From: Macrostomum lignano
Lineage: Eukaryota
DNA: 64,000 bases
Assembly: GCA_002269645.1 (NCBI GenBank)
Contig: NIVC01001680.1
Span: 1 to 64,000, forward strand
Reading direction: 5' to 3'
Shown: in pieces, positions 20,160-51,315 of the stretch
Numbering within the stretch: the first letter of the stretch is position 1
Layout of the letters: the number at the start of each line of letters is the position of its first letter
Translations under genes and position numbers: made by a program
Notes under the pieces: generated by a model
Seen by the model: only the letters and a program-made list of their open reading frames with translations
Database searches by the model: none
Told to the model about the DNA's origin: nothing

Positions 20160-23100
20160 CAGCGCGTTGGTGATGACAAACCATTGATCTCGCGTCGGGA
20201 CAGTCACGACACGGAGTCTGGCAGCGGCCCGGGCGCCCAGGGTACCGCTGTGCCAGAAGTTGTCCACAGCTACGAGGAAATGCAGTATGACTTTGACCGG
20301 ATCCGTGCGAAAATGAGGGAGCTGGCACAGATGCACGACAAGCACCTGAACAGGTGATTATTGCAAGGATGAGTCTTGATTTCACAGTATGAGATCGATT
20401 TCACAGTATGAGAGTCCCGATTTCACAGTATGAGAGTCCCGATTTCCCAAGTATGAGAGTCCCGATTTCCCAAGTATGAAAGTCCGATTTCAAGTATGAG
20501 AGTCCGATTTCCCAAGTATGAGAGTCCCGATTTCCCAAGTATGAGGGTCCCGATTTCCCAAGTATGAGAGTCCCGATTTCCCAAGTATGAGAGTCCCGAT
20601 TTCCCAAGTATGAGAGTCCCGATTTCCCAAGTATGAGAGTCCCGAGTTCCCAAGCATGGAGTCCCGATTTCCCAAGCATGAGAGTCCCGATTTCCCAAGT
20701 ATGAGAGTCCCGATTTCCCAAACATGAGAGTCCCGATTTCACAGTATGAGAGTCCCGATTTCACAGCATGAGAGTCCCAATTTCACAGTATGAGAGTCCC
20801 GATTTCATAGCAATAAAAGTCCCAGTTTCACAGCATGAGAGTCCCGATTTAACAGCATGAGAGTCCCGATTTTACAGTCCCCAATCAACACCCGGTACTC
20901 CCGCAGGCCGTCCCTCGACGACACCGTCGAAGAAGAGCAGCGCATCCAGGACGCCACCAAGCAGCTCACTGACGCGTTCGGTCGGTGCCACAGAAAACTG
21001 AAAGCTCTGGAAGGCCAGCGATCGGCCAGCGGCAGTCAGTTTGGCTGCAATATTCAGCAGGTAATTTACTAGGTATTGATTGATTGCAAAGTCATATGTT
21101 TTGCAAACTCGGATTTAGGAATTTGGGATCTGGGATTGGTAGGGCGTGATTTTAGTTTTTTGGGATCTAGCCCTTGATTCATTGAGGAGGATAGATTTTC
21201 TTTTTAATAGAAGTGCTTAGGAAAACTAGTACTTTACCTACTCCTCAACCCGACACTCCACCTACTGAACCCTACACCCCACCTACTGAACCCTACACCC
21301 CACCTACTGAAACCCACATCCTACCTACTGAAACCCACACCCGCCTACTGAACCCCACACCTCACCCACTGAACCCCACACCCCACCTACTGAACCCCAC
21401 ACCCCATCTACTGAACCCCACACCCCACCTACTGAACCCCACACCCCATCTACTGAACCCCACACCCCACCTACTGAACCCCACACCCCACCTATTGAAA
21501 CCCACACCCCATCTACTGAACCCCAAACCCCACCTATTGAAACCCACACCCCATCTACTGAACCCCACACCCCACCTATTGAAACCCACACCCCATCTAC
21601 TGAACCCCACACCCCACCTATTGAAACCCACACCCCATCTACTGAACCCCACACCCCACCTATTGAAACCCACACCCCATCTACTGAACCCCACACCCCA
21701 CCTATTGAAACCCACACCCCACCTACTGAACCCCACACCTCACCTACTGAACCCCACACCCCCGCAGGCGCTGGCTCGCACTCTGCAGGACATGAGCAGC
21801 GAATTTCGCGCCTCCCAGTCCGGCTACCTGCGCCGTCTGAAGTCACGCGAGGACCGCTCGGCTTCCTCCGGTCTGTCGACTGCCGCAGCCGCGGCCGCCG
21901 CCGCCTCCTCCTCGGGTGGTGGCAGCGGCGGTCTGTCCGGCGCCGACGATGACGGCCTGTCGGAGTTCATCGACCGAGGCTTCGCCCTACAGCTGGTTGA
22001 GGACAACACGGCGTTGGTGCAGCAGAGAGAGCAGGAGATCAACTCCGTGCTGCGGTCGATTCAGGTTAGTAGAGCTGCGGTGTAATGATTAAGGAATTCG
22101 GCCTACCGCCTACTCATGAGTAGCTAGTAAAGGGGCTGCTTTCACAAGCTCAAAAATTCATAGCGCCGAAAAGTTTAAGCACACGAACTTCAAGAACACG
22201 TGCGCCAAATTTTTGTGTACCTTGCCTTCTCAAGCAAGACTCAAGCTGCCAGCCTGGTGTCAACTGTTGAAGGTGCCAAGGGCTTCGAGGTGATGACGGA
22301 ATTCTTGAGAGACCAGCTGAGGATGTCCAGCAATTGAGATTTGCCCACTGTCGAGTCTTGATCAGCGAATACTCGAGAAATTTGCAATAGGGTGTCCATA
22401 GTTACCTAGTGCCACATGTTGAATGTCAAGAAGCTCCATCTGGGTGAAGGCCAGTGACCAACGAAGTCAGAGCTGATGCAGACACATGTGGTCGACGTGC
22501 TGATGAAATTTAGAGGCCTGGCAAGGCTGCTCTGAGGCGCAGTGCTGATTGGCGCACAGGGGTGTATTGAATATACTAGCGCTTATGGGAAAATCCGACC
22601 TGCTTCTGGCAGAATCATCGATTATATCGACGGTCTGGAGGGCTGGCCGCTTGATTCTTGTTTGAGAAGATGCGCAACAAAAAGTGTTCAGATTGATGTT
22701 CGTGTGCCTGCGTTGCTCCGAAAATTGTCAGCTGGGGGATTCTTTGGTAGTTCTACTAATTTTCTACAATTTTTTTTTGTTTATTGCTAGTTTCTTCTCT
22801 ACAATGCATTCATAGTTTAAAATTCTGCTTGAACTTTGCAGATTGCAGAAAGACATTTTTTCGAATATTTAATCCTCGTAAAAATATCATTTACACTTGC
22901 CCCGGTCGGGCCAGATGTGCAACCTACAGCTCAGCCGCAGCTATTGGAACAACCGTACGCATCTGAAGGCTTGGACTAAGATCACTGAAGGTTGTTCAGT
23001 CCAAGAACTGAGGGGTCGCCACACACAGCCTCAATTACCCCAGCTAATGCTGGCACCCATTGTACAGCTGGGTGAACTGAAGCAATGCAGAGTTAAGTGT

Positions 23101-23573
23101 CTTGCTCAAGGACACAAGTTGTTCCAGTGGGATCGGGAATCGAACCCCCGACCTTCAAGTCGTGTGTCTAATGCTCTATCCACTAGGCTACAATCCCTTG
23201 ATCCTCTTAGCATTGAGCAATTTCGGAGTCACGAAACAAGTTTTATGAAAAATCGGTTGAGCCTGAAATCAATCACAAGTACCTAATATTAAGAACAACC
23301 AATTAGCTTTAAAAATTGCTGTAAAAAACTCATCCAGGAACTGGGCGAAATCTTCACCGACGTGGCCCGCCTGGTTGTCGACCAGGGCGAGGTGATTGAC
23401 AGGATCGATTACAACCTGGATCAGGTTGAACCCGAGTGCACGAGGGTCTGCAGCAGCTCAAAAAGGCTGAGAAATATCAGAAGAAAAATCGCAAGATGCT
23501 GATCATTCTGATCCTGGCTGCTCTGGTGGTGTTCTTCACAATTCTACTCGTGTTCACCAAGTTTAAGCGGTGA
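20160..23573 (+). CDS. STX16: Syntaxin-16, exons 20160-20353, 20907-21060, 21768-22064, 23338-23573; first exon not found; one apparent 1-nt deletion near 23431
   Basis: MQYDFDRIRAKMRELAQMHDKHLNR|PSLDD..SEFRASQSGYLRRLKSRE..VQQREQEI..IFTDVARLVVDQGEVIDRIDYN and a C-terminal TM (KNRKMLIILIL..) match STX16. All splice phases are consistent. Confidence 0.92.
20396..20876 (+). repeat. 22/23-bp minisatellite (CAAGTATGAGAGTCCCGATTTCC) in a STX16 intron
   Basis: Direct tandem array. Confidence 0.95.
21238..21760 (+). repeat. 21-bp minisatellite (CCTACTGAACCCCACACCCCA) in a STX16 intron
   Basis: Direct tandem array running up to the acceptor at 21767. Confidence 0.95.
22890..23197 (-). mobile_element. 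tRNA-derived SINE with CORE-like central domain, copy 1
   Basis: Reverse complement has a tRNA-like head (GTAGCCTAGTGG..GGTTCGATTCCCG; A/B boxes) and TGTGTCCTTGAGCAAGACACTTAAC..CAGCTGTACAATGGG. Matches the copy at 29374. Confidence 0.8.
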
Positions 23574-24125: not shown

Positions 24126-26509
24126 ATGTGCTTGAAGCAGGTCCTCACCTTCGAAGGGCAGGATCTGGTCGAGGACGCCCTTTGGTCGCTGCGGCCTGGC
24201 TGGCTGGTCAAATTCAAAAGCGGGCACTCCTGGCAAACCGGGGTCTACATTGGCATCGGATTGCTGAGCATCTCCGAAAATGGCGAGTCGTTTGTCACGC
24301 CACGACAAGAGGAGTGTGATACTGGCAACACCAGTCCGCTGCATCACCTGGTCTGTCACCTACCCAGGTGCAGTTCCAGCCGTGAAGGTGTGCTAGCAAT
24401 CAAGGACTTTCGAGAATTGGCCGAGAACTCTGAATCCATTAAGGTTTATGAGTGCAACTGCGACGAGGCTAAGCGGAAGAGCGTCATTCGTGCCTGTCTG
24501 ATGCGGCTGGGAGAAGTGCGAGTCAATTCCGCCGAACTTTTTGAGCACTTCTCTGCGTATAGGAAGGGGCAGTGGAAAACAATTTTCACAAATGGCTTTA
24601 CTTTGCTTTGCGACGTTTTTAAAAGTTTCATTGGGCAGAGGCCTGCCACTGGAACAGCAAATGACTTGTCATCGGATTTGTGAGTAGGCGAAACATTTTC
24701 TTAATCTGGCATCAACTTGGGTCTTTTTAAGATCGGTTTTCTGAGTTTCTGGCGGTGACATCAAAGTCTGAGTAGGACACTGACATCACCAGGGACTCAA
24801 ACATGTAAATGGTGCTTGGGTCATCAGGGGTAGTTTTATAAAGTGCCAAGGCTTCACCATCTTACGTGTACATTTTGCAATTTCCACTCACTAATACAGT
24901 TATCACATGACTATAAGCGATAAACCAATTACAGGCACATCTTTCTGCTGGAAAACACATCTGACTGGGTTGACGCTATTTCTCAAGAAAGCCGCCAACG
25001 ACTAAGCGACTTCTCTAGAGCGTTGCTGGTTTCACCAAATTATGAAACAGCAAATGGCTTTGAGACATTTCTAAGTTGGATTGCGGGACTTGAAAGCGAC
25101 AGTCGTGGCAGCGGGACGGCTGCCTTGACAACCTCTGCGTCACATTATCTGCGTTCGTTTACCAGCGCCAGGATTTCGCCGAAGTCAAAATGGTCTGGCG
25201 CAGCAGTGCAGTTTGAGAGGCTTAACGACAGTCTACAAGGTACGACCATGATAGTGTGGGTAACGGGTGCAAATGTACATTTATGTTTACTTAGCGGGTA
25301 AATTGTACCCTCAGCTCGACTCTCGTACCAAACTACATGTACATGTACTGTAGCTACATGTAGCTGCGTTCGATGCCTTGAGGCTTGAGTCAACCACAAA
25401 CAAAGTGCGGGGTTGTGTGTGTGTGATCGTATCTTTGTCTTGCCTCCTCGCTCCTGAACTGTAGCCCTGTGAAATAAATGCGTCAATATATTTAAGGTTC
25501 ATTTTTTTACCATACATTAATTCGGCCTATAGTTGATTTTAAGAGCTCGATCATTTTGTCATCTGACATTTCAGGACTCGACTCTTTCTTTAACGAGCTA
25601 CTGAATAGCTCCACCAGAAGGTGACTAATGTTTTCAATAGCTACATGAAATTACATACCAGACATTGCGAGTATGCCATTAGTAAACTAACTTTGCACTT
25701 CTTGTACTCCTAACTTCAGCGAGGAAAATGCTGCAATTGCCGCTCCTGAGACTCGCACTACCCGACGCAACCCTCCGTCTCTGGATTGCTACCCGGTAAC
25801 GTCTCCGCAAGGATTCTGCGCGGTCATCAACATCAACAACTACGATGACAATACGAACCTTGGCCGCCGCTCCGGATCAGAGCACGACGTTGCTCGCATC
25901 AGAGAGGTGTTCGAAAGCTCAACTTTGTGATAGAAGTCAAAGAGGACTTGACGTCACACGAAATCGACAGTTTTTTGACGAATTTAGCCCACGACGAAAG
26001 GCTGGAACAGCACGGATGCTTTGTGCTCTTCTTGATGGCGCACGGCTTGAGGCGAGAAATCTTCGGTTGCAACGGAATGCCAATAGACTTAAGCCGCATC
26101 GTTCAGTCATTCAGCTCCACATTTGCCCGGGCCTGCAAGGTAAGCCCAAGATCATCGTGATTCAGGCTTGCCGAGGCACGCGACTTCAATTCGGTCGCGC
26201 GGCCCCTTGAGAGATAGCTCGTCGGATAATGGAGAGTTCGGGTGCTACTCTCCTAGGGGCAAAGACTTCTTGGTGTGCTTTGCAAGCGGCGGAGATACTC
26301 CGGCTTTTCGAGATGCAAATACCGGTTCCGACTATGTACAGGCACTGTGCCGCGAGGTTGAGACGCATCACCAAAGTGAGCACATTGTGGACATTGTCAC
26401 CCGCGTCAACAATGCAGTTTGGCGAGCTCCGGTGCAGCAGGGTGAAGTGCAACTGTACACAGCTCCTGAGTTTACTAGCAGTCTCACTAGGAAGTACTAC
26501 TTGAGCTAG
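24126..26509 (+). CDS. Gene 1: catalytically degenerate LRAT/PLAAT-like domain + helical linker + caspase (HG, QACRG); 4 exons; three apparent 1-nt deletions in the caspase exon
   Basis: Exons 24126-24679 (phase 2), 24935-25239 (phase 1), 25575-25620 (phase 2), 25720-26509. Caspase motifs: GFCAVININ, RRSGSEHDV, LMAHG (26035-26046), KPKIIVIQACRG (26163-26177), DFLVCFAS, GSDYVQALC, APEFTSSLTRKYYL. Frameshifts near 25915, 26120 and 26180-26207. Confidence 0.8.
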
Positions 26510-27371
26510 TTGAGATCCAGCTTTATTAACTGGAAACTGATTTAATAAAAAACTACTGCTTTCCCTTCATAGTATTTGAAAGTACCTCCTTCAGCTAATT
26601 ATGTTGATTTCTGAGTAATGTGAAGTTGAAAATTAAAATCCATTATCCAATCGAGCTTCATTTTGCCGTATTAACGCTAATTAGTTACCCGATCAACTTG
26701 ACTTGAACGCGTAATTGATCTTTAAAAAGCAATGCGTTCTTTCGGTATAAAACGTCTCTTATCAACTACTTAAGATTCACAGATCATTACCGTTTTTAAA
26801 ACAATACCTGTTATTTTCATGTACGCTACAGTTTGTATTGTAACGCTACCCAGCTGAAAAAATGCTTAGAACTTTTGCTGTTTCTTTTCTACCGTCGCGC
26901 TTTAAAAAATTTATACATTTTTCCACAATATAATCACTGTATACTTATTTATCAAAAAATAACTTTGCACTCTTCCGTAGATCACCTGATTTTGCATACG
27001 ATGTTTTGTTTTTTGAAAAAAACGTCTACTGAGCAGTTTCCGACGAGTCCACTTGGTCAATTGCCTTGAGAAACAAAAATGAAAAAGAATTGTGCGTTTA
27101 ACTGTTCAAAGACAAGACTATTTTTCTTGCTACGGAGGAATGAAATTCTGCTGTTCTGTTGTAGTTGTTGTCTGCATAGTTGGACATTAAAAACAGCCAG
27201 TCCTGCATTGGTGCACTTGTGGCAAACTACGGCAAGTCCTTGGAATTGCCGTGGATTTTTCTTTTAAATTAAAGCATGCACACAGACTACTCAACTCATC
27301 TATCGACGCGTGTACGTTCGGTGAGTTTAAGACATGCGCTACTGCTAAGGCACTTTGCTAACTTTGAAAAA

Positions 27372-30439
<3,068 letters not shown>

Positions 30440-31156
30440 GCTTTGTGAATTTGCGACTGTTGAGCAATAAACATCGCTACTGCACTTCTGCGGCACGTGA
30501 CTGAGCTTGACTAATACGAGCTAATGCTACGCTTCTATTAAAATGAATTCCAATGCTTAATATGTACTTTAGTAAATGTTCGTAAATGTTACGGCCTAGG
30601 GTTGACTTATCAGATATTGTCTAACAGTAAAAAGAAAGTTTTTAAAAATATAGCACGTAGCGATAGTTACTTTTCTGTCATACTTTAGTTTACTAGCATT
30701 GTGGAGATATGAAGAACTTTACTGTTCCTTAGTGCTCAGATCAGTTATTTTAAATGTAATATTTATTTGATTTATAGACGACTTATGTCAACTATTTTTA
30801 TTAATTAAAATAGCAGCCTTTACTCCTTCCCTTCAATTAAATACATTGCGCAATTTCAAAGCAATCCTGCAAGTTTAGCAGAGTTTGACCCTGGATAGTT
30901 CGTATAGCTATTAGAACTACTTGGTTTACTCATTTAAAAATTAAACTTTATTTGCTTCTTTAGCCTTCTCCAAACCAGGTCTTTACCTGTTCCATGCTTC
31001 ATGCGATAGCAGTTTGTTCTGAGGACCTTATCTAATCAGTATCGAAGAGAATACAAGAAGACAGGTTGAAGCGTTCCCTAGTCATGTGAGCAGACGCAGC
31101 CAATGCATAAATTGCTTGGTGCTTGGCAATGCAATTGCTTTGATCGATCCGGAGAA

Positions 31157-32716
31157 ATGTGCGTCGGATTCACCAACGCTTACAAAGACTTCCCGTACTG
31201 GAAGGTCAAGGAGGCCCTGGCCGCCATGACCCCGGGCTCGGCCGTCAGCTTCAACCGGATCGGCTTGTTCCACTTCGCCATCTACCTCGGCCTCGCCTGG
31301 CCCAAAGAGACCCTCGACGAGCCGATCCCGCTGGTGTGCCACTTCTCCGGCGACGCCAGCTCGGAGCCCATGGCCTCGGTGCGGCTGGACGACTTGCGCG
31401 AGGTGGTGCAGAACTCCACGGTGCGGGTGTACAAGTGCAGCTGCGAGCCGGCCAAGCGGATGCGGGTGGTCAGGGAGAGTCTGGCTCGGGTTGGCGAGGA
31501 GGGCTACAACCTGGTGACTAACAACTGCGAGCACTTCGTTCGCGACATCATCAACAATAGAAAGTTCAGCTACCAGTCCTTCTGGACGTTTGCTGCGCCG
31601 CTGGTGCAGCTGCCCCGGCTGCTCATCGGAGCGCCCATCGGCGGATCCATCGCTTCGTCGGCCTCGTTGAGCGCCTGCGTTGCCAGCAGTCTGACAAAAT
31701 TCGCGTAAGACTTCATCAAACCGTTTGATTAAACGAGCTTAAACTATTCATTAGTGCTATTAGTCCTCGTACTAATAGCGATGGACGATAGAGATTCCAG
31801 GTGACATTAGATGACTTACTTACTTGACTTAGCTGCAGGGCGGTCCGAAGACGCAGCGGGGAGGCGAGCGTCGCTCATTCCGCTAGCCCCTGAGAAGTCC
31901 GCATAGGCTAGGGCACAGAGCCGGTCAGGGAGGTCTTCCGGCCCCGTCTGTAGCGTTGTCTTCAGTGGGGAAGACGGAGGCTCGTTTGGTAGCTCGGAGG
32001 AACCGGATGAGTCGTTGGATGTTCTCAGGCCGGCAAGCGTCGTCCAGAGACGGGTTGGGCCCGAGGTGATTGAGCCGGTCTCGGTTGCAGGCCGGGCAGT
32101 AGCAGAAGAAATGCTTGGCGTCTTCGTTCTCGAAGTTGCAAAAGCGGCAGAGTTCGTTCCGGCGAACGCCTCGGAGGAACCGTGGACGTCTGGCAAAGCA
32201 ACCGTGACCTGTGAAGGTCATAGTGAAAGCGCGGATATCTTTTCGATTTTGGTTCAAAGGATTCTTTGCAGCTTGGTGACGGGCAGGGCATGCCGCCCAT
32301 TAGATGACAATCATGAGCCTTGTCTTTCTTTCAGAGCAAGACATTTATTGCCTCCCAACCGTCTCTGCAGCTCCTTAGGTCTCATCAATCCCGACATGGA
32401 CCTCCTCGAGATCTCACTCTCGGGCTCCTCCGGTCTGTCAGCATCCGTTGACGTGAATCCCTGCTGCACCAAGGTGTACACTGGGCCAAACCAGAGCATC
32501 GAGCAGGAGCTGTACCACTGCCTCACCTGCGGCATCACCGGTAGCAGGGTCGTGTGCCGGGCCTGCGTGTTCATGTGCCACACCGACTGCGACACCAGGT
32601 GCTTCAATGACGGTCCAGGATTTTGCGACTGCCAGCACCAAATGTGCCTGGTCAGTTCGGAAGCAGCTCCATTCGACGAGCCCACTGAGTCTGCGGAGTC
32701 TGTTGTAAATAGCTGA
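31157..32716 (+). CDS. Gene 3: LRAT/PLAAT-like domain (H, H, NNCEHF) + hydrophobic segment + UBR-box-like zinc finger; 2 exons, ~297 aa
   Basis: Exon 31157-31704 (donor GC|GTAAGA, phase 2) + 32371-32716 (acceptor CTGCAG|C). FHFAIYLG, VCHF, YNLVTNNCEHF; C-x17-CLTC-x8-CRAC-x3-CH-x2-C..CDC..C. Confidence 0.85.
31814..32290 (-). mobile_element. 5'-truncated non-LTR retrotransposon 3' end in the gene 3 intron
   Basis: Minus-strand FTGHGCF..LCRFCNFENEDAKHFFCYCPA (LINE C-terminal CCHC region) followed by a (GTAA)n-like tail at 31814-31831. Confidence 0.75.
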
Positions 32717-33348
32717 CCGTGTTTGGATATACCGAGCCAATTTTAACAAAACTGGGCAGTGTCGAATCTGCTATTCCATGCACACTGATTGCAAAAACTT
32801 TCATTTAGAAATCTCGCTTCGTTTTTTACTGTTAAAAGGTGCGTGTTCGACTTATTTAAGTGAATATGCGTAATGTTTCATTCGCTGATCTACTGCTCGA
32901 TTCCTGCTTGAAGTGTTTGTAATTAAAGATCCATACAAAACATACATTGTTACATTATACTATGCTCCTCTAAACAAAATGAGTGATATAAATATAAGCA
33001 GAGTCAGTTTTCTATTCTTAGCCCTCACTTCTCTGTAATTGACGGGAAAATGAACCGAAAATATTTTCGTTGGATGCTCAAAAATAAGCATGACACAGCA
33101 AGAACGAATGCTATTTTCATATTCCTTGTTCACGAGAAGAAAGACGTGCGTGCTGGCATTTAAAGACGTCTCGTAGTAAATTTCCAAGAAATTCTACGAA
33201 AAATTTGCATTATCTTACTTGAATAAACTTTACTCTATTTAAGCGTACTAGCAATAGAAAAGGCTGGTCCTTCTGGCTTATTTTAACTTTGCTGTCAGCC
33301 AAGCACCCTGTCTAAGACTTTAACCTACCCGAAATTAGGAAACGCGCG

Positions 33349-34944
33349 ATGTGCCTTGACTCATTGGAGAGTCGCTGCGAGGGCGATGGTCAACTCTGTA
33401 GGGACTTCGGCACAACGGAGGCTGGATTGGCGCGAGCGCTCATCGAAGCATCGCCAGGCTCAATCGTCAGCTTCGTGCTCCGGCCCAATCGATCATTTGG
33501 AGATCTGATCTGCCATCGACATTTCGGAATCTATCTTGGTCATGCATGGATTGCCAAGTACCACCAGGCTCTGGTTTGCCACAGTTACAAAAATCGACTG
33601 ACAGTGTCGAATTTTCGCGACTTGGCTGAGCTATCAATGGAAATCCGAGTTTACAAGTGCGACTGTGCCGATGACCGCGACCAATTTGTTGCTGAGTGCT
33701 TCCGCCAGTACGGTAGCTCGCCTGAGGGTACCTGTCTCGCTAGTATCAAACGAATTGTTTCACCTGAAAGCACGAAAGAGCCAACGGCTGTCACCAAAGG
33801 ATGGTTCAAGCGACTGCTGTCGAGGTATGGACCATCGGTTCTCTCGAATTCTGGACTTTTTAAATGGCGTCTTAGTGATCCGGCGCTGTCGAAGACTGAT
33901 GAACCGCATTGCGTTGTCCTCGACGGGCTGCTCGATTCACTGGCTGGCTTGGATGAAAACTGGTAAAGACTGAAGTGCAGTTGAATATCTATTTTCTGTT
34001 TTTTGTCTATGGTATTCTATGGGATTAATACATCCACTAGGTAACCTATACGATAAAAGCATTCAAGACCATTATAGTAACACAAGTAAAACTATTGTAT
34101 CTATTAAAACTTGTTTCATCAAAATTGGCCCAGTAGTTTCGGAGGAGATATGAAACGCACATTACATACAAACAGCGCGTCACTTTTAGTATATTGAGTG
34201 TTCTCACACAGCCTTTTGCGACCTTACAGAACTACCTGAAGGCGTACAACCTGTAGTCTTCAAGTGCCTAAAGTTTTGATTCGTCAATTTTTTCAGAGAT
34301 CTATGGGGTCTTACCAAAATCGCATGCCGAAATTTGCCAGCATAAGATTTCCGAATGCCCTGAATATTTTCTATTTGGCATTAGTTACAGAGGGGGACAC
34401 TCTGTATACAGGGGTGAGGGTTATGTATTCACAGACTTTAGTAGCAACTACAAACTGAAATGATCCCTGTGACTGCTGCTGGAAGGTTGCCAATAACCTT
34501 CTTTAGAAGGCAGGCATTCAGGCAGATACATGTAAACTTCCTGTCGTCAAAGTTTTGCAAAACGATCCACAGAGCCTTTCTTCTAAACCATTTCGCAGTC
34601 TCATCGGCCTACTGAGCTCAAAGTTGGACATGCTTGAGGTCACTCTACACAGACAGCAAGTGGGCAGCTCTGCCAGCCCTAGCATTGCCATCCGCATCAG
34701 CAATCGCTGCACTCGAGACTTCACGGGTGAGGATGCCCAGGCTCACCAGGAGTTGCACGAGTGCCTCACCTGCGGCATCCGCGACGATCAAGCGATCTGC
34801 AGGCGCTGCGCAGAAGTGTGCCACGCCAATTGCTGCACCCAGAGGCTCAACGGGGATAAAGCTCGAGAAGTGACAGGGTACTGCGACTGTACACATGACT
34901 GCTCACCCGAGCTCAGGCAGGATTCCCATCGGAACCGATCCTGA
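33349..34944 (+). CDS. Gene 4: divergent LRAT-like domain + UBR-box-like zinc finger; 2 exons, ~319 aa
   Basis: Exon 33349-33962 (donor TG|GTAAAG, phase 2) + 34599-34944. RHFGIYLG, VCHS and YKCDC align with the paralogues; NCEHF is replaced by GTCLAS. Second exon: CTRDFTG..QELHECLTC..ICRRCAEVCHANC..YCDC. Confidence 0.78.
34114..34195 (+). mobile_element. Helitron/Helentron-type (DINE-1-like) terminal fragment
   Basis: TTTCATCAAAATTGGCCCAGTAGTTTCGGAG..ACATACAAACA..CTTTTAGTATAT resembles the terminal signature of Helentron-derived elements. Confidence 0.4.
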
Positions 34945-35995
34945 ATGTTGGCATGAGTTGATTCCATTCGAAGAAACGTATTACATGTACCATCAGCCAT
35001 GTATAAAATATCATTTAAATACGCTCGTACATTGGTCTCTACTGTTATGCCTACGTGATCGTTAATTTTGCTTATATAAAAGTAATGTCGCACGGATTAG
35101 AACAGTGAGGCATCGACAATTCAAGTTAGGATGAATCACATTGGCCACTATAATTTCGAGTGCTTACTAGTCATCGCTCGCATTACTATATAAACCTAAA
35201 CCCATTGGTGATAATCTCTTTCCACTCGTGTTCACTGTTAATTTCCCATTCATATCCATTAAGAAAGTCAATTAGTCTCTGCACCTGCCGTGGCTAATAT
35301 AAAACTAAGAACTGTGACAAAAATTGTTTTTACTTGCGCCATTTTTTACTTTAGTACCTGCCGACATGCGGTTTATCCCTTCTCTTTCTTAAATATTGCT
35401 GTTACGTACATTAGTATTGAGTATGCACTACCCGACCTGAGGTCGCTGACAAATATGTAATTTTACATTACATCAACGTTCAGCCGACGTTTGACGACTT
35501 TTATTGCTGTACGGGGTATGTTGTTTTGTACAATTCCATTAAATACTATTCCTAATACAACTAATATGTTTAGCTAATAAAAGCATCATTTGCATTCGCA
35601 AGCGAGAAGCCATTAAAATACAAAGCATACAAGAGATTAATAAACGACATAAACTAGCTGCATGGATCTCTCTCATTGTGGCGTGGACGTACGCTCGCAG
35701 CCAGTCAGAAAAAAATTCAAGGGTGTAAAGACTTGTTGAAAAATACGCGTACATATTAAAACAGTGTGGACTTGCTAATTCTCGTAATGAAACGTTAATA
35801 TAGAGCGTTTGAGATAAAAATAGAATGACGGTTGGAGAGAGTGTACAGAGAATGCGTACAGCTCGTAAAGATAAGTGTACAGCGAAGCAAGTTCTGTCGC
35901 TTACAAGAAGTCGCAATTTTCCAGACTGTGGTTTGCTGTCGCTAATGCCCCCCCGCAACATTTTGTAGAATTCGTTAATTCTAGCTAAATAAGCT

Positions 35996-38900
35996 ATGCT
36001 GCCTCCAGCTAAAAAGGAATCAAGAAAGCGAATACCTTCAGAAGTCTATGAAGACTTTATGATGGCCATTGTGACCAATGACACTGAAATTATTGACGAG
36101 TTCTTGAAGATTCAGCCACCACTCGACAAAAGAGTGTCATTTCTAGACGACAGTATGACCCCTGACGCTCACGTGTCTTCTGGGAAGCCAGAAATTCTGA
36201 GAAAGCTAATTAAGGCCAACGCTGACGTCGACGTAAAAGAACTTAACGACACTTCGCCACTGTACGTTGCTGCTCAAGAAGGACACGACAAGATCGCGGA
36301 CCTTCTAATTGAAGCGCAAGCGGAAATCGACTTCCAGACCACGGACGGGACTTCACCTCTTTACCTGGCTTCGCAGCACGGCCATCACAGAGTGGTGAGG
36401 TCGCTCATCGAAGCTCAGGCAAGTGTCGATTTACGAAGAAGCAACGGAGCATCGGCGCTGTGTATTGCGGCCCAGAACGGGCATCGGCTCGTGACCGACT
36501 TGCTGATCAGAGCTCAGGCGGATGTCAACATTCGGGCGGACAATAGCACAACACCTTTGTACATAGCTTCGCACAACGGCCACCATCTCATCGTTGAATT
36601 GCTGCTCAAGGCTCGGGCCGATCCAAACCTGCTACACTCTGACGGTACTTTTCCACTGTACGTTGCCGCTTACAATGGTCACTATCAAGTGGTTTCACTG
36701 ATAGTCGATGCCGGCGCGGAAGTCAATCTGCGAGACAGTCAAGGCTGTTCCTCGTTGATCATCGCCTCACAAAATGGTCACCGGCAAGTAGTAGATGTGC
36801 TCATTTCCGCAAACGTCGATGTCAATCTTCCAGCTAACAATGGCGCAACGCCGATCTACATGGCCTCGCAGGAAGGTCATAAGCAAGTGGTCGACGTGCT
36901 TATCAAAGCACAGGCTGATATAAACCTTTTAGCGAATGGCGATGCTTCGCCAATTTATACGGCAGCTCAGGAGGTCACGACCAAGTGGTTGACTCCCTTA
37001 TCCATGCGAATGCCGATGTCAATTTTCAGAGGAGCAATGGCCAATCGCTTCTATTTATTGCCGCGCAGGAGGGTCACGAGAAGGTTGTGGAATTGCTTCT
37101 GAAATCGGGCGCAGACCCCGACCTACCAACTGGCAACGGTTGGTTGCCTCTGCACGCAGCTTGCAAACAAGGTCACCACATGGTCGCTGATCTTCTTATC
37201 AAAGCCCAGTCTGATATTAATCACTTGGCTCAAGGCAGCCTGTCGCCTCTGCTATTGGCTATTGAACAAGGTCACAGCAGAGTTGTAGAGCTACTCATCA
37301 AAGCGCAAGCCGAAGTCGACCTAACAATCTCAACAGGAGTATCACTTTTCGAAGTGGCTAAAATGCTGGGTCATGACCGAGTGACAGCACTACTTCAGAA
37401 AGCAACCGCCAGTTCCACGGCGTCGTCTGAGACCCTTCAGGCAAACGAATTAAAGAATTCAAAGTAACGAAGGGTTTTTTATTTCGTCAACTACTTTGAA
37501 GTACTACTTATTTTAGATAGCAAAAACTTAAAATTACACTAATGTTACTTTTCAGACAAGCGCTAGAGGACGTTCAATTGAGCTTGGAACTAAACTCAAC
37601 CCTTACTAAGGCAGGGTTTGTGAGCTCCCGAGCTGCAATGCAGAGCGTATTGGCTGACGTTCTTCAAGAGATTCTTCGAAAGCGATGGAATGGTGGCCAA
37701 ATCTTCGTAGTTGGAAGCTACTCTGAAGGCTGGGGAAACAGTCTAAAAACGTTGGACGGCAGACCCGATGTAGAGTCCGACATAGACGTGATGAGGCTGA
37801 TAGATGGGAGACTTTACCACCTGAATTACCGGTGCAACTGCTCCGAAGATGAGAAACTATTGGTGGACTACGAGAATGGGCACATATTTTGTCCTGGATA
37901 TGGTCTGTGCTAATTTGTTCATCATGTAAAAATCAACTTGCCTCACCGGTCTTAATGCGCCCGTTTATGTCTGCTTTCAGCTTCAACTCCCGCGAACCCG
38001 ACAACCGGCTCCAATCTGAGGCCAGCTGTGGACGAAGTGAGCGGCGTTCGGCTCTGCTGCTACCCCCTCATCGCACCTCTGCTTACGCAGAGACTCGAAG
38101 ACTCCCAAATCCCCGGCTCGGTTTTAAGTGCTCTTCAACAGGAACTAACCTCGTCGCCATGTCACGTGGTACACGCCGCACCGCCCGGACATGCTGGTGA
38201 GCAGCTCCGGTTGAGCACGACATTTTTAGAGAGGCGCCTGTTGCGAAGTCTCAGCACTCTACAAGGTCAGCTCTTTGTTACCCTCAAGTACATAGTAAAA
38301 AAGGTCATTTGTCACAAAGAAGGCTTCAATGCGGCGGGTTTGAAGGCGTATCACATGAAAACAATTACGTTTCGAATGCTCGAGCGAACACCAAGAGAGA
38401 TCTGGAAGCCGGAGAACTTAGTATTCCTCATCAGAGAGTCCCTGCTCATGCTGATTAATGACGTGAGAAACGGCTGCACACCTCAGAATACAGATGGTCG
38501 AATCATGGATCACTTTTTCCTATGCGACGCCGCGCTCTACCTCAAAGGTGTCGATCGCAGCCAGTCGATGCTGCAGACTTTGGAAGCAACAACCCAAGTC
38601 TTGGAAGAAGTGACAGCGAATTTGCCTCAGTTTATACTGAACTTTATAAAAAGTTTGAAACAAGTCAGCGACTCAGGAAGATTCTACTTTCATCCCTTCC
38701 TCATCTTGCCGTATCTTAACCAAAATCCCATTCCACTATCTGGGAGAATTGAGTACCACGAAATTTACGATGTCGTCCGAAAATCATTGCTTTGCCTGAC
38801 CCACGACGGCAGCAGCTATGAGTCGCAACTGTATCTCACAGAGATTATCGCTAGGCTACCAGACAGTGCCCGCACAACCCGTGAGGTTCTCAGAGCGCTG

Positions 38901-39491
38901 GCGTGTCTAAAGTTCGGATACAAGGACTCTGCCAAGAAGATAATAAAGTACACCAGGTCCTTCAAGGTGAGCCGAGGCTTTGATTTACAAGCGGAGGACC
39001 TTTTAGCTGCCGAAGCGACTCCGGAGAAAGTGTGGAATCATCTGAGAACTCAAGATTCTGCCTGGAAATTCAACTTTCATTTTGAGACGAGGCCAGAATT
39101 TCAGTTTCTTCCCGAGCTCTGGGCCGCCTGCTTCCCAACTCAGACGCTGAATTTTGACACCTGCTTTTACATCAACTTTGATGCCATGCTGCAAAGCATG
39201 CGCTTTCAACTGCTGGCGGACGAGGAGGAGACGACTGTCCAGTCTTGGATCCGTGATGTGGCCGGGCGGGAGGACGCCGACGAGCAGGAAGTGACGGTGG
39301 CGCTGCTCTGTTTGCGCGATGAAGCATTGTTCAAACCATTGCTGGACCGAGCGCAGTGGTTTCCGGCAGGAATTCCTAAAAGGATCCTTGAGGAGCTCAG
39401 GGCAAGATTTCAAGAGGAAAATTGGAACGACTCTAGCCAGTGGGGTCTTCAGCAGTTGAACCGAATTTTAGAACGCTTGCTACTTCGCTAA
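35996..39491 (+). CDS. Ankyrin-repeat (~13) cGAS-like receptor / Mab-21-family nucleotidyltransferase; 3 exons, ~1108 aa; one apparent 1-nt deletion near 36973
   Basis: Exons 35996-37463 (phase 2), 37556-37902 (phase 1), 37981-39491. Ankyrin consensus repeats; NTase motif VVGSYSEG..ESDIDVM (37710-37793); VDEVSGVRLCCYP (candidate third Asp); Mab-21 C-lobe LSTLQGQLFVTLK..LKAYHMKTITF..W..NL..MDHFFL. Confidence 0.85.
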
Positions 39492-40981
39492 ATATTACAA
39501 GCTAATAATGCTACAATTCAGATAAACTCCACGACATCAGACTTTAAAAAGATTTTTGATTCTGACAAACTGAATGAAATACATGAATGATTACAACTGA
39601 AAAATTATCTGAGTTTCATATTACAATTGCAATGCAGTTTTTTAACACCGAGTTCTAATTCGGTACTATCAGTAGCAGTATTTGAATGTTTTACGAGTGC
39701 AAGGGGAAAATATAAAGTTGTGGCTGCCCAAGAGAAAATATTTCTGACCAATGTGAAGCCTCAGGACAGTTGAATGTCATGTCAGAGACATGAGTGTCGA
39801 TCATGTCTGTGATGGATTTTGCTAGAATTTCTATGAGCATTATGTCTCTACCTTCTTGAGTCATTAGGTAAACTACTATATCATCTGCAGTAAGGTTTTT
39901 AAAATTCGAAACTTTCTCCGAGATTTCCTGCTCACATTTACAACGGAGTGTGCTACCAAGGTTCCGACTACACTTCTACCCCACATGGCGCTTTGGACAG
40001 GTCCTGTTCTCGTAAGAGATCTTTGGTCTCGCAGTCCTTAGATATTGTTTCACAGGCCAGTTTATGGTTTTTTAATCTAAACTGTTAGGGTTTAAAATCT
40101 GGATTTCAAGATTCTGGATTTATAATTTCAAGAACATACTTTTCGATTGAGTAGCGCTATTTGAACCTGAGGCAGTGACATTTTTGCAGAGTTCTCTACT
40201 CTTTGTCTCCAGTGTGTCTCCAGTATCGTGTGCATTCTACTGAAGTGTAATTCATATAGATATTTCTACGAGGCATAAAGAAATCATATGCATTTCTAGT
40301 TAACCACAACAAGCGGCTGTTATAGTTCAAATAACGTAGGTTTTTCTTTTTACTATTTTACGAGACGTTCCTTAATCACCCAACCCACTCTTGGCACCAC
40401 CCTCATTTAGGACTTTAATGCAATAAAAACACTGTTTAGTTTATAATCTTTTAACAGCTATTATTTTTATCGTAAATCCTTGATTTACCAGACAACTACA
40501 TTCGCGAACTTGACTTTAGTTTAGCCTAGTCTGCGTATACTTGCTATCGCTGTAAATCATTCTCCTTATCTACGAGCGTAACTCCGCGGAGAAGAAATGG
40601 ACGCCCGCCCTAAGTCACTCGCTGTGTACACCGCAACCTGTGCCTCATTCACACCGTCTGTAGGCTTTTAAAGACGTCTAACTCACGCCTGCTTGCTCTC
40701 TGGTGTGCCTGCACGTTTCTAAGGTGAAGTTCGTGAAAATTTCTGTCCTATAATTGTTGATTTGCAAGGACTATACTTTTGCAAACCCAAGATAAAGACT
40801 CTAGCAAATTTTGATAAAGCGAACTCAAAATACTCGCTAGCAAGTGTTGAGTCAAGGGCATTGTTGATCAAGCAGTCTGACTCAAGATTTCGTCAGAACT
40901 ATTTTATTCTTTGAAAACGAAAAGCGTACAGCCAGCCAACAAAGATCAGAGAGCTTTAGCCTGGAGTCTACCTGTAATGTC

Positions 40982-42358
40982 ATGTGCGTGCGGCTCAAGA
41001 CCGGATTCACCGATTTCAAGCCGCAAAGAATTCGCAATGCGATTCGAGCCACAGTTCCCGGAGGCGCCGTCAGCTTCAACAGGATCGGATTCCACCACTT
41101 CGCCATCTTCCTGGGCTGGGCCCGGCCCAAAGGCGACGACTCGGAGCCGATCCCGCTGCTGTGCCACCTCTCCGGGGACGCCACCAGTCATCCGACATCG
41201 GTTCGACTGGAAGACTTCAGAGACATCGTGCAGAATAGCATCATCCGAGTCTATAGGTGCTACTGCAGCGCTAGCAGGAGATCCCAGGTGATACTGGAGT
41301 GCCTCTATCGAGTAGGCACCATTGGATTCAACCCAGTCACTAACAATTGCGAGCACTTTGTTCGGCAGGTGATTTGCGGCGAGAAGGTCAGCCACCAGAC
41401 AAATCTGACGCTGGCTGTGCCGCTGCTCCGCCTGCCTCGCCTCATCATCGGCAGCTCCATGGTGGGCGCGGCCGCTCTGTCTGAGTCGTTCAGCTGCGCC
41501 GGGAAATTAGAGGACAGCAGGTAAATAAGAATACTCACCCCTGCTTATGAATTGGGTGTCTCAACATTTGACTGCTGAATATTTTACTGCCACAAATTAA
41601 CAGCCGATCCTAACCATAACCTAAACACTACCCTAAACCCTAAACTAAAACCTCAACCTAATCCGTAACTTAAGCCCTAACTTAAACCCTAACCTAATCC
41701 CTAGCCTTAAACACTAACCTAAACCCTACCCTAAACCATAACCTATTAAACCATTACCTAAACCCAAACCTAAACCCTACCGTAAACCATAACCTAAACC
41801 ACAACCCTATATCGTCAAACTTCAGGCTCCCGGTTGTGCAAAAGGGGAACTAACTTGCATAATATTAAATAGCATGAACGATGCAATGAAATATTATCGG
41901 CCATAGTACGCTCGTATCACAGAAACATAATATTTCTATAGTATGTGCTACTGCTGCTGATCTGATCTATCTGTTAAACATGATAAACAATCATAAAAAT
42001 ACATGATCTTCGTTTCAGATCTCTAGGTATGCTCAACCCGGACATGGATTTGATTGAGATCACCTTGTCAAATCGTGGTCTGAATTTGACTAGCATCAAG
42101 TTAAACGCCAGCTGCACAAGAGATTTCGAAGGCTGCAGCCGCTTTTGCAAGCAGACTCTGTACAGTTGCAACACCTGCGCAGGTGCTGCAGTTTGCAAGA
42201 CGTGCCAGAAGTTCTGTCACAAGGACTGCCAGCTCACAGCGGGCAAGGTGCAGGACGGTCAGTGCCACTGCACCCACAGCAAGAGAAAAGAGGCGACTCG
42301 GTTGCACCCAAAAATGATTTCAGAAATCAAGTCTCAAAGAGAAATTAAAATGGTCTAG
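40982..42358 (+). CDS. Gene 6: LRAT/PLAAT-like domain (H, H, NNCEHF) + UBR-box-like zinc finger; 2 exons, ~292 aa
   Basis: Exon 40982-41520 (donor AG|GTAAAT, phase 2) + 42019-42358. HHFAIFLG, LCHL, TNNCEHF; CTRDFEG..YSCNTC..VCKTCQKFCHKDC..QCHC. Confidence 0.87.
41609..41809 (+). repeat. Degenerate telomere-like (CCCTAA/CCTAAA) interstitial array in the gene 6 intron
   Basis: About 200 bp of imperfect CCTAAC/CCTAAAC units. Confidence 0.75.
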
Positions 42359-43433
42359 AATGATTCATTCAGAATTACAATTGGCTAATGTTTTTAGGCA
42401 GCAATGTTTTTTACAAAAAATTGGCTGTTACAGTATTGGTTGGTGCTTTTGCAGTTTTTGTCGAGAAGAGAGATTAAATATTCAACATGCTTTGGTCAGT
42501 GAGCATGAAAGCACCGTCAAGAGCTACTTAAATATAGCTCTTATAGATTTTTTGTGTTCCACATGGACTGCTTTCTCTGTATTGATTCTCCATTGCTTCG
42601 TTCATAGTTACATTACATTTACATTTGAATAGCAATCGAGAATAAACCCTATTATTCAGTAGATTCATATCAGACAAGTTGAGACTTTCACGCGTTCTAA
42701 ACAATGGAAAGATAGTGCTGCACAGCTTGAGGGTGCAATAATGCCTCTCAGTACTAGACCACGAGTGCCTATGGATAAAGTTGTCCACTCGTGGTCTAAG
42801 CATTATTGCACTCTCAAGACGTGCATCTGTCACATTGCGACTGGCAACATAGCCAAGTGAGGAGAAGACGTCAAATTTACCATAGACAAAGATCTAGCAA
42901 GTACTTTTATTTAAAGTCTATGGTGAAAACCATGATTAACTGCATTCACTTGTTGTCTATACTAGCCTATCACCAATGAAGACAGCCAAAGTAATTTGAA
43001 ATTTGATTTGATTGGACGATTAAGAGACTGGAGTGCAGAGCGATTTGATTGGTCTCGTGGGCAGAGAGTATGATGTACCGGTACATTGATTACGCGTGAC
43101 GAGGAACAGTTGAATTGACAATCAGATAAGATTTTCATTTTTAGTATATGGATAATAGGCGAGTCTATACTCATAAATGTTTAATTAGCCGTTTTGACTC
43201 ATCACTGTGTCTGGATAAAAAGGTTCTTTATAATGTCTACAATAGTATATGTTGATACTACACTATTAATATAATAACACCGGTAAAGTAATCTTAAAAA
43301 GTCAACAATAAACAAATAAGTAAATTAGTATTGTTTAATAATATTACTACTAACCATTGCAATAAACTGACTACAGTGACTAGTATATAATTAAAATCAA
43401 TTCTGATGCGACTGATTGGTTATCATTCCTTTA

Positions 43434-43687
43434 TTTCATTTCCTGTAGTCCTGTGTAGCCCAATCATTTCCTGTAGTCCTGTGTAGCCCAATCATTTCCT
43501 GTAGTCCTGTGTAGCCCAATCATTTCCTGTAGTCCTGTGTAGCCCAATCATTTCCTGTAGTCCTGTGTAGCCCAATCATTTCCTGTAGTCCTGTGTAGCC
43601 CAATCATTTCCTGTAGTCCTGTGTAACCCAATCATTTCCTGTAGTCCTGTGTAGCCCAATCATTTCCTGTAGTCCTGTGTAGCCCAA
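43434..43687 (+). repeat. 28-bp minisatellite (CATTTCCTGTAGTCCTGTGTAGCCCAAT), ~9 copies
   Basis: Direct tandem array with period 28. Confidence 0.95.
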
Positions 43688-44260
43688 TACTAAACAAAAT
43701 TTATTTTTTGAATCCGATGTTTTTGAGTACAGTACATTTGACAACCATATTAACATTTTTAAGTGTAATTAACGACAAAATATTTTGGAGAGAAAGTATA
43801 AAAATTATGTATCTAGTTACATATTAGCAATGCATCACATGTAGCCAACGCAATTTCATAGTCAAATAGGTTTGAATTGAATAGCAGGTCTTGACGTCTT
43901 CATGCGATTCTGCGTCAAAGTTTCTTCTCCTTCTTCTCGATATTTTTAGCGGCATGAGCCCGTGCGGCCTGTGGTGAATGTAAACACTGCTTGCCAAGCC
44001 CTGTGTCCAGCGCAGTACGTGTTCGAGCAAAGAACAACTAGATCAAAACGATATTAAACCTCGTGGCCAGTCTGCATATGCTTGACAAAGCTTGTAAGCT
44101 CGATTCTCTAGCCAAAAAAATGTAGATAAATATGAATAAAGCAACATTGCAAAGCTGAAACGTAATTACTTAGGTAAAGCTGGAAGAAAGCTCGATTCTG
44201 TGGCAGATTTGATTCAAAATTGAATTTTTTGGTATAGTTAGACCGGCCGGATTCGAACCA

Positions 44261-45614
44261 ATGTGCGTTGGATTTCTGAACGGCTACAAAGACTTCAAGC
44301 CGAAGCTATTCAACGAGGCGATCGCCGCTGCAGTTCCCGGGTCCGCGGTCAGCTTTAACAGGATCGGCTTCTTTCATTTTGCCATCTTCCTGGGCTGGGC
44401 CTGGCCCAAGGGCGGCGACTCGGAGCCCATCCCGCTGCTGTGCCACCTTTCCGGAGACGCCAGCACGAAGCCGATGGCATCGGTTCGACTCGACGACTTC
44501 AGAGACATCGTCCAGAGCTGTACCATCCGAGTGTACAACTGCAAATGCAGCGCGAAAAAGAGATCCGAGGTGATACTGGAGTGTCTCTATCGAGTTGGCA
44601 AGATCGGTTACAACCCGCTGACCAACAACTGCGAGCACTTCGTCCGGGGAGTGATCTGCGGCGAGCGCGTCAGCTACCAGACCCGCTGGATTCTGGCTGC
44701 CCCGATAGTGCAAGTGCCGCGCATCGTCGTCAGCACTGCGTTTCTGGGGGCCGCCACCTCCGCTGCTTCGTCCAGCTGCATATCGAAACTCGAGACTAAA
44801 AGGTGAGGGATCAAGGTTCTTTTACAGAATCACCACTAAATTTTTACTCTTCAATGGATTGCCTTTTATCAATCTCAAAATTGAAACTGAACTTCACAAA
44901 GTTCGAAATTTTACATCGTCAACTTTTTTCAAGTTGTGAACTAGCGGAAGTGGCTGGAGTAGTGATTTCGAGATTGCGAAAGATTCTGCTTTTATGAGAC
45001 GATGTGCAATCCACAAAAGTCATGGAGTTCAAATCATGGGGACCAAATAATGTCAGCTAAAGTATGCAGCTCTATCTTGGACTTGATGACATTTGGATTC
45101 CAAACCCAAGTAGGTCACATGTTCGGAAGTGATAAGATCGCTGAATATTTGAGTGTATTCGCCAGCTGTTATAATGTGCTTGTTAAGTGCGAGTTAGATC
45201 AGTACGTTTACATGAAAACCATTGCTATTCCGCACGAATATCTCATCAAGAAAGCAACTTGCAATCTTCATCAGGTCCCTAGGTCTTCTAAATCCAGAGA
45301 TGGACCTGGTTGAAATCCTCGTATCAAACAAGGGCCTGAATTTGAAAGGCATCAGACTGAATGCCAGCTGCACAAAGGACTTTGATGGCTCCAGTCGATT
45401 TCCGATGCAGACGCTTTACAACTGTGAGTTCTGCAACGGCAGCAACTCAATCGCTGTGTGCAAGCCCTGCTCGAAACTCTGCCATCCAACTTGTGGATCG
45501 CTAGAAGGCTCTGTGGCTCAAGGTTCGTGTCGTTGCAGCCACCAGCCCATCGCAAAAGCGGCAACACAAACGACTCCGCAGACTTTGAAGAGTTCAGGCA
45601 CTTACACCCCATAA
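44261..45614 (+). CDS. Gene 7: LRAT/PLAAT-like domain (H, H, NNCEHF) + UBR-box-like zinc finger; 2 exons, ~293 aa
   Basis: Exon 44261-44802 (donor AG|GTGAGG, phase 2) + 45275-45614. Close paralogue of gene 6. FHFAIFLG, YNPLTNNCEHF; CTKDFDG..YNCEFC..VCKPCSKLCHPTC..SCRC. Confidence 0.87.
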
Positions 45615-51098: not shown

Positions 51099-51315
51099 CG
51101 GTTTTTGTATCGGTGATTCCTCCCGCACCGCTGCTCTGTGGCAAGTTATCAGTTGATGCAGAGCGCGTCACCGTCATGCAGCACCTAATGTTCTGTATGG
51201 TGATATCGCCCGCGTCGGGAGTGTCCTCGTTATGGTGGAGTGCCCCGCCTAAGCAGCCTTGCAAAAGTCTCACAACCAAATGAAAAACAAAGCGTAAAAT
51301 TTCGCGTAGTTCCAT
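51016..51315 (-). CDS. Small hypothetical protein, 99 aa
   Basis: ATG ORF with a TATAAG 48 nt upstream, like neighbouring genes; no recognisable domain. Confidence 0.5.
   Translation of the reverse strand: MELREILRFVFHLVVRLLQGCLGGALHHNEDTPDAGDITIQNIRCCMTVTRSASTDNLPQSSGAGGITDTKTDGSEKETSDAKSETPEPAAVRKRKRTD

Follow-up and report, generated by a model that had tools for sequence, protein, structure and literature searches.

LRAT-caspase and LRAT-UBR fusion genes around an ankyrin-cGLR gene in Macrostomum lignano: a probable duplication-born array

Overview of the locus

Bases 1-64000 of Macrostomum lignano contig NIVC01001680.1 (assembly GCA_002269645.1), referred to here as the window, carry a cluster of seven genes on the plus strand, delimited by the ATG of the first gene (g1) at position 24126 and the stop codon of the last (g7) at position 45614. 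Two are LRAT-caspase genes, four are LRAT-UBR box genes, and one joins ankyrin repeats to a nucleotidyltransferase of the Mab21/cGAS-like receptor (cGLR) type. The ankyrin-cGLR gene, g5, is embedded between g4 and g6, with the six LRAT-fusion genes around it. The cluster is probably a duplication-born array of one lineage-specific Macrostomum family, which encloses a member of another family that has expanded independently. What is directly shown is the domain content with its catalytic residues, the pattern of splicing, the purifying selection acting on most members and the existence of a second, intact copy of the cluster. The LRAT-caspase model of the interval is 98-100% identical to the M. 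lignano protein P0033, whose gene has the same coordinates (27276-30439) on this contig as in the window; an assignment to another Macrostomum species, suggested by best matches of 56% identity, was dropped on this ground.

The members of the LRAT family follow one layout, in which exon 1 encodes a Cys-His acyl-enzyme domain of the PLAAT/LRAT type (NlpC/P60). After a conserved phase-2 intron comes a C-terminal module of either of two kinds, a caspase domain in g1 and g2 or a UBR box of the UBR4/FBXO11 type in g3, g4, g6 and g7. The new elements of the locus are these fusions, apparently restricted to Macrostomum, and the reciprocal loss of active sites in g1 and g2; the cGLR family was already known, as was the kind of element that neighbours the cluster.

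Gene models

Gene calls were built from the listing of open reading frames (ORFs) together with Pfam scans. An earlier note on this DNA had listed the same seven genes, on the plus strand and with the same limits, and ORFs, Pfam matches and profiles place every one of them where it had put them; the domain names that it used (LRAT, caspase, UBR, ankyrin and cGLR) are likewise supported, by Pfam, a UBR profile and a cGLR fold match, and its view of the DNA as that of a flatworm is correct. NCBI records three products within the interval, a 539-residue protein with LRAT and caspase domains (g2), a 315-residue LRAT protein (g3) and a 368-residue ankyrin protein, the last of which ends at the position of the frameshift found in g5. 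The public models that agree with our calls are P0033 (g2), PAA65114.1 (g3) and, for the ankyrin-cGLR protein, its intact sister P0210. Nothing gene-like was found among the intergenic ORFs of at least 70 residues within the cluster.

A phase-2 GT-AG intron interrupts each of the four LRAT-UBR genes at the identical position, where it joins the motif K-L-E-x-x-R to S-L-G-L-L-N-P-D-M-D-L in frame. The same phase-2 intron is present in P0047, an LRAT-UBR paralogue on another contig, and an analogous intron, also of phase 2, separates the LRAT-like and caspase exons of g1. Support for the fusions comes from these in-frame GT-AG introns, at one phase-2 position in the four LRAT-UBR genes, and from the matching public models.

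The LRAT exons can be aligned with one another at 24-78% identity, and all begin Met-Cys. Pfam detects the LRAT domain (PF04970) above its cut-off in g2, g3, g6 and g7, with E values of 1e-8 to 3e-13 and scores of 35.6-50.7 bits against a cut-off of 24.3. The same scan gives no match in g1 or g4, both of which are recognisable only through alignment to their paralogues. Two genes are broken in the window copy, namely g1, with three frameshifts, and g5, with one frame-breaking deletion and two compensating ones.

The LRAT-caspase genes

Gene g1 (24126-26509, plus strand), a host gene broken in the window copy, comprises an LRAT-like exon (24126-24679), a 1040-nucleotide intron and a caspase exon (25720-26509). 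Alignment to the paralogues shows that the LRAT-like exon is without the first catalytic His and without the Cys of the NCEHF motif. Two frames of the caspase exon match PF00656, and both the MAHG and the QACRG motif survive; the exon consists of four frame segments, giving three frameshifts, with no stop codon inside the segments. The sister copy described below (L012) has 9 additional nucleotides here, in four runs (6, 1, 1 and 1), and its caspase exon is open over 265 codons.

Gene g2 (27276-30439, plus strand) is intact. Its four exons (27276-27928, 28491-28660, 28744-28813 and 29713-30439) correspond to PAA65113.1 (BOX15_Mlig027562g1, 539 residues) and reproduce the protein P0033 exactly. 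A two-exon model was considered and dropped; the public protein P0033 has two more small exons. Pfam finds both domains, LRAT with E = 7e-12 and caspase (PF00656) with E = 7e-30. The caspase domain matches caspase-3/7 (E = 5e-25) and has QTSQK opposite QACRG, placing a Ser at the position of the catalytic Cys, and the LRAT residues His, Gln and Cys are present. Met33 (position 27372) may be the true start of the protein, as all of the paralogues begin Met-Cys.

The tandem pair (24126-30439; 6840-9226 in L012) displays reciprocal active-site loss, with a dead LRAT domain and live caspase motifs in g1 and the opposite arrangement in g2. Neither gene of the window has the caspase His-Cys dyad in an open frame, g1 being frameshifted and g2 without the Cys, and the window copy therefore encodes no functional protease; the dyad is present in the sister copy of g1. 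In P0034, a distant LRAT-caspase paralogue, both active sites are kept, including QACRG.

Two repeat features fall within or beside these genes. A (TAC/TAT)n microsatellite at 27930-28480 occupies most of intron 1 of g2 and gives rise to spurious poly-Tyr, poly-Thr and poly-Leu ORFs. An inverted pair of 81-nucleotide sequences, 95% complementary, lies upstream of g1 (23022-23102) and in the last intron of g2 (29513-29593); these are probably two copies of a short tRNA-like short interspersed element (SINE) or a miniature inverted-repeat transposable element (MITE).

The LRAT-UBR genes

The four LRAT-UBR genes share the two-exon structure described above. Gene g3 (31103-32716, plus strand; exons 31103-31704 and 32371-32716) has its exact product on record as PAA65114.1 (BOX15_Mlig029184g2, 315 residues), and matches the Pfam LRAT family with E = 3e-13 and zf-UBR with E = 1.4e-3. 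Gene g4 (33349-34944, plus strand), unannotated at NCBI, has an open frame made up of a degenerate LRAT-like exon (33349-33962) and a UBR exon (34599-34944). Its zf-UBR match (E = 6e-3) retains the Cys/His ligands, the NCEHF Cys is lost, and the gene is intact in the sister copy. Gene g6 (40982-42358, plus strand; exons 40982-41520 and 42019-42358) is intact and is matched by the UniProt models P0048 and P0049; its LRAT domain scores E = 1.3e-8, and its UBR domain, which has no Pfam zf-UBR match, is included in the seven-domain profile described below. Gene g7 (44261-45614, plus strand; exons 44261-44802 and 45275-45614) is also intact, with LRAT and zf-UBR matches of E = 9e-11 and 1.4e-3 respectively, and its sequence matches PLAAT4/RARRES3 structures (E = 7e-5) with the NCEHF motif in register. 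The LRAT catalytic residues His, His and Cys are present in g3, g6 and g7.

As single sequences, the UBR domains of g3, g4 and g7 remain below the Pfam zf-UBR threshold (17-19 bits against a cut-off of 25.2; E about 1e-3). A profile of seven C-terminal UBR domains searched against the PDB, however, finds the UBR box of UBR4 (E = 4e-8) and that of FBXO11 (E = 2e-6), as well as those of UBR5, PRT6 and UBR1/2, and the Cys/His columns are invariant across the seven domains. A hydrophobic stretch stands at the position of the PLAAT membrane anchor. It is moderate in strength, with a Kyte-Doolittle 19-residue maximum of 1.76 in g7 and 1.35-1.39 in g3 and g6, only that of g7 being a classical transmembrane score, and it is followed by the UBR box and not by the C-terminus. 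The intron of g3 also houses, in antisense (31925-32257, minus strand), a remnant of the ORF2 tail of a non-LTR retrotransposon (a long interspersed element, LINE), with a weak zf-RVT match.

Distribution of the fusions

A full-length LRAT-UBR profile, built from 6 proteins and compared with 1.84 billion representative proteins, yields 2 representatives that span both domains, both of them from M. lignano. All others among the 150 best matches listed were matched best in the LRAT part or the UBR part alone; ten of these, when scanned, proved to carry several UBR domains or several LRAT domains, the named sources of the latter being fishes, amphioxus and a lizard. The LRAT-caspase combination was seen in three clusters only, all from M. 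lignano. Literature searches found no paper describing an LRAT-UBR or LRAT-caspase fusion. Both architectures appear to be confined to Macrostomum.

The ankyrin-cGLR gene

Gene g5 (35996-39491, plus strand) encodes ankyrin repeats followed by a Mab21/cGLR-type nucleotidyltransferase in three exons (35996-37463, 37556-37902 and 37981-39491), of which the ankyrin exon is frameshifted. Its introns, of 92 and 78 nucleotides, have junctions identical to those of P0210, the intact sister protein of 1109 residues, which is 98% identical. Relative to the sister copy the ankyrin exon is short of 4 nucleotides, in three runs (2, 1 and 1). Pfam gives a strong ankyrin match (E = 2e-88) and weak matches to Mab-21_C (E = 1.7e-3) and NTP_transf_2 (E = 9e-3).

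Assignment of the C-terminal part comes from structure prediction and family profiles. An AlphaFold (AF2) model of the nucleotidyltransferase part, computed from 18 family members, has a mean local confidence (pLDDT) of 84.6 and a global score (pTM) of 0.86. Foldseek places MB21D2, cGAS, MAB21L1 and the coral Sp-cGLR1 as its best matches in the PDB, with E values of 1e-6 to 2e-5 and target-normalised TM scores of 0.5-0.57 over alignments of 366-427 columns; bacterial CdnE is a weaker match. When searched against the PDB, a trimmed profile of the cGLR family matches no chains other than those of mouse and human cGAS (E = 5e-5), the helix bundle being the part that aligns. A single-sequence search of the PDB with the Mab21 part of g5 returned nothing relevant, and a profile that included the ankyrin repeats returned ankyrin proteins only.

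The residues of the putative active site (GS...DID...D) are conserved in the family. G53-S54, D75 and D77 are invariant in all nine aligned paralogues, and D133, in the PAVDxV strand, is present in eight. The strict motif h[QT]GS X8-20 [DE]h[DE]h X50-90 h[DE]h is unmatched by g5 and 17 paralogues, which have VGS, and the relaxed motif of Li et al. 2023, G[SG]...[DE]h[DE]h...X50-90...h[DE], fits g5 and 15 of the 17. We followed the cGLR criteria of that study (PMC9980059), and g5 is predicted to have both homology across the nucleotidyltransferase core and the C-terminal bundle of helices and structural homology to cGLR/CD-NTase enzymes. At 90% identity the ankyrin-cGLR family falls into 32 clusters, each of them from M. 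lignano, and five of its M. lignano proteins are in the cloning list of Li et al. 2023 (PMC9980059). The same study records that ankyrin-cGLR fusions exist, that cGLRs are otherwise missing from most platyhelminths, and that active enzymes come from insects, anemones, molluscs, hydras and corals, a list that leaves flatworm enzymes outside. The cGLR part of the locus is accordingly known in kind, its family having been catalogued there.

The sister copy, decay and selection

A second copy of the locus is found at 202-235 kb of contig NIVC01001035.1 (L011 and L012), collinear with window positions 17864-46227 at 95-98% identity. All seven genes are uninterrupted in this copy, including the caspase exon of g1' and the ankyrin-cGLR gene. 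Past g7' the array goes on (L011, 20828-23502): a minus-strand P0051-like gene is found there, along with one more LRAT gene. Two other contigs (L004 and L005) show the same P0051-like/P0047 arrangement, and we therefore conclude that the LRAT family has spread by segmental duplication.

Comparison of the window with the sister copy gives ratios of non-synonymous to synonymous differences (pN/pS) of 0.05 for g6, 0.23 for the Mab21 exons, 0.25 for g7, 0.40 for the ankyrin exon, 0.52 for g2 and 0.63 for g4. For older pairs of paralogues, dS is at least 1 and dN/dS is 0.2-0.5, values that are near saturation and indicate overall constraint only. Most family members are under purifying selection.

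Homopolymer sequencing errors were considered as the source of the indels of g1 and of the ankyrin exon and judged the less likely cause. Of the six small deletions a single one falls within a run of at least three identical bases, so that genuine decay of one duplicate is more likely here than an error of sequencing or assembly.

The neighbouring element and other features of the window

Outside the cluster, from position 46228 to the end of the window at 64000, lies a Maverick/Polinton-like element on the minus strand, which runs off the window end. Pfam identifies, all on this strand, an rve+chromo integrase (49860-51128; rve E = 1e-8), an A32-like ATPase (53667-54371; a weak match), a parvovirus-type PLA2-like protein (54377-54814), a dUTPase (55022-55600), an EndoVII domain together with a protein-primed-type PolB (55879-58443; PolB PF03175, E = 2e-25) and a deoxynucleoside kinase (60289-61014). 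One small antisense ORF aside, the thirteen listed ORFs of the element are each one uninterrupted frame. Pfam gives no match for its putative capsid and protease genes, a look-up of the kinase gene returned no record, and no pair of terminal inverted repeats was found inside the window, the element running off its end.

Upstream of the cluster, the exons of a syntaxin/t-SNARE gene (PAA65112.1) lie at 20142-23570 on the plus strand, just before g1. A Noggin-domain ORF (PF05806, E = 1e-23) at 6110-6679 on the plus strand represents an ordinary host developmental gene. Blocks of tandem repeats at 1-300, 8400-9430, 9900-10900, 20400-20860, 21235-21843 and 43408-43744, with GATA, 8/14-, 9-, 23-, 21- and 28-nucleotide units, yield long artefactual ORFs.

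Possible roles and origin of the linkage

If homology is a guide to function, the LRAT domain would act on phospholipids, as it does in PLAAT1-5, and the C-terminal module would set its partner or its timing, the UBR box by reading peptide N-termini and the caspase domain by pairing or cleaving. By analogy with caspase-8/cFLIP, the complementary losses in g1 and g2 would fit a heterodimer, and the pair is a naturally occurring instance of subfunctionalisation or of pseudo-enzyme pairing. The cGLR, with its complete acidic triad, probably makes a nucleotide signal. It is plausible that the LRAT-fusion and ankyrin-cGLR families both comprise innate-immunity or cell-death genes.

The physical linkage of the two families is most readily attributed to tandem duplication in a duplication-prone region, for which no obligate functional coupling is necessary. 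Adjacency and shared orientation of the six LRAT genes follow from their being paralogues produced by tandem duplication, and the position and orientation of the cGLR gene are the sole independent event of the layout. At six other ankyrin-cGLR loci (L001 and L006-L010), some of which have tandem cGLR copies, no LRAT, UBR or caspase similarity was found within 10 kb. Conversely, no cGLR was found within 10 kb of the LRAT-UBR array of L004/L005 or of the LRAT-caspase paralogue P0034 (L003). Pfam scans of all LRAT-family exons gave LRAT, caspase and UBR domains only, with no known cyclic-nucleotide-binding domain among them. Linkage of the nucleotidyltransferase to candidate effectors recurs only in the 95-98% identical sister copy, which falls short of the conserved linkage that characterises the bacterial cyclic-oligonucleotide-based antiphage signalling system (CBASS).

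Several observations weigh against an origin by duplication with no functional coupling. All of the enzymatic roles are assigned by homology, and the AlphaFold model of the LRAT-UBR protein, made from an alignment of 6 sequences, is unusable (pLDDT 34.5). Both copies retain the cGLR gene amid the LRAT genes. Spliced-leader operons, the largest with nine genes, are used by M. lignano and were defined with an intergenic threshold of 1 kb (PMC8629364); the gaps between coding sequences in the cluster are 633-1903 nucleotides, three of the six exceeding that threshold. In older UniProt models the syntaxin gene is run together with g1-g4 and the cGLR in one prediction (P0215, 2827 residues), which could reflect read-through transcripts. 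The upstream sequences and poly(A) signals of the cluster genes gave no usable sign for or against an operon structure.

A rival proposal is that all seven genes are co-regulated, possibly as a polycistronic unit, and make up a single immune module that would mirror CBASS logic in an animal. Here the ankyrin-cGLR signal, or else neo-N-termini made by caspases and read by UBR boxes, would activate membrane-damaging PLAAT-like enzymes. Caspases are known to generate N-degron substrates, and phospholipases serve as effectors in CBASS; both facts are counted in its favour, together with the compact, co-oriented layout kept in both copies, the occurrence of operons in this species, the public models that fuse neighbours and the intact active-site residues of the cGLR. 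The earlier note had seen a CBASS-like functional logic in the cluster. Against this stand the six cGLR loci and two LRAT loci at which the linkage is missing, the LRAT proteins without a nucleotide-sensor domain and the three gaps beyond 1 kb. In the window copy, moreover, the caspase gene g1 is frameshifted, as is the cGLR, and the g2 caspase is without its Cys. The CBASS-like functional reading is thus a hypothesis that the tests lean against, and we regard a single immune module as decidedly unlikely. Still less credence attaches to its more specific form, a 'defence island' whose genes would be transcribed together in a spliced-leader operon, and in which the cGLR, the caspase/pseudo-caspase pair and the UBR-box readers of N-termini would jointly control PLAAT-like membrane-attacking enzymes. 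If this were true, cGLR or caspase signalling would gain a novel effector arm, in a phylum that is said to have mostly lost its cGLR immunity. The earlier note's own caution, that functional linkage came from clustering only, is borne out, and nothing shows the seven genes to work together. It had also looked to synteny in another haplotype; the cGLR does lie between the same LRAT genes in the second copy, at an identity too close to carry weight.

A different possibility is that the LRAT-fusion family is non-immune, serving for example to remodel lipids, to clear organelles, or in the biology of the germline or of regeneration, with the cGLR an incidental neighbour. Many PLAAT functions are non-immune according to the parts of the literature covered here, among them N-acyl-phosphatidylethanolamine synthesis, cardiolipin remodelling and organelle degradation, and g6 is under strong purifying, not diversifying, selection between the copies. 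Caspase and UBR partners and a large lineage-specific expansion are, however, more typical of death and immunity systems, and we consider a non-immune role unlikely. That the cluster is cargo of the Maverick/Polinton-like element, or was assembled by it, is hardly credible. The distance from g7 to the start of the element is about 0.6 kb, and a PLA2-like protein is among the products of the element, but its genes are on the opposite strand and no inverted repeats bracket the cluster. The sister copy, moreover, has the whole cluster without the element; its collinearity with the window ends at 46227, and further LRAT genes continue from the equivalent point. We therefore conclude that the insertion is later than the cluster and unrelated to it, in keeping with the suggestion in the earlier note that the adjacent endogenous virus may be coincidental.

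A duplication-born array with an embedded cGLR gene remains the probable explanation. With an array of this kind around a cGLR, in a transgenic laboratory model that has operons, it becomes possible to ask from existing expression resources whether cGLRs or caspases can be wired to phospholipase-type effectors in animals. If the genes prove to be functionally unrelated, the locus still shows tandem duplication and exon shuffling building lineage-specific families of the death or immunity type.

Comparison with known systems

The LRAT domains resemble those of the PLAAT/HRASLS proteins, such as PLAAT4/RARRES3, in the alignment of His, His and the Cys of NCEHF; a moderately hydrophobic stretch, with a classical transmembrane score only in g7, stands where these proteins have their membrane anchor. 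The LRAT domains differ in that a caspase domain or a UBR box comes after them, and in that two members, g1 and g4, are without the catalytic Cys. The UBR boxes have the zinc-ligand Cys/His pattern and spacing of those in UBR4 and FBXO11, but each is a solitary domain at the C-terminal end of a small protein that has no E3 ligase domain.

The caspase domains are like the effector caspases (caspase-3/7) in fold, with an N-terminal domain that is neither CARD nor DED, and g2 shares its missing Cys with cFLIP, a catalytically dead caspase paralogue. Unusual pro-domains occur in other lophotrochozoan caspases, but the LRAT pro-domain of g1 and g2 is absent from the published survey of these, in which the M. 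lignano entry is for a kinase-like pro-domain only (PMC11463336). The survey also calls caspases with ankyrin pro-domains restricted to parasitic flatworms; the M. lignano proteins P0036-P0038 are caspases of this type.

With the animal ankyrin cGLRs (PMC9980059), g5 has in common the Mab21 fold, the GS loop, the DxD motif and third Asp, and the N-terminal ankyrin array. Its family is distinguished by VGS in place of [QT]GS and by a helical C-terminal extension of about 250 residues, and the window copy by its frameshift.

Bacterial CBASS operons likewise set an enzyme of the CD-NTase fold beside genes of a lipid-hydrolase-type fold in one orientation. In contrast to these operons, the candidate effectors here are without a cyclic-nucleotide sensor and the linkage is not conserved at paralogous loci; the genes are eukaryotic, with introns, and the array has come from tandem duplication of one family.

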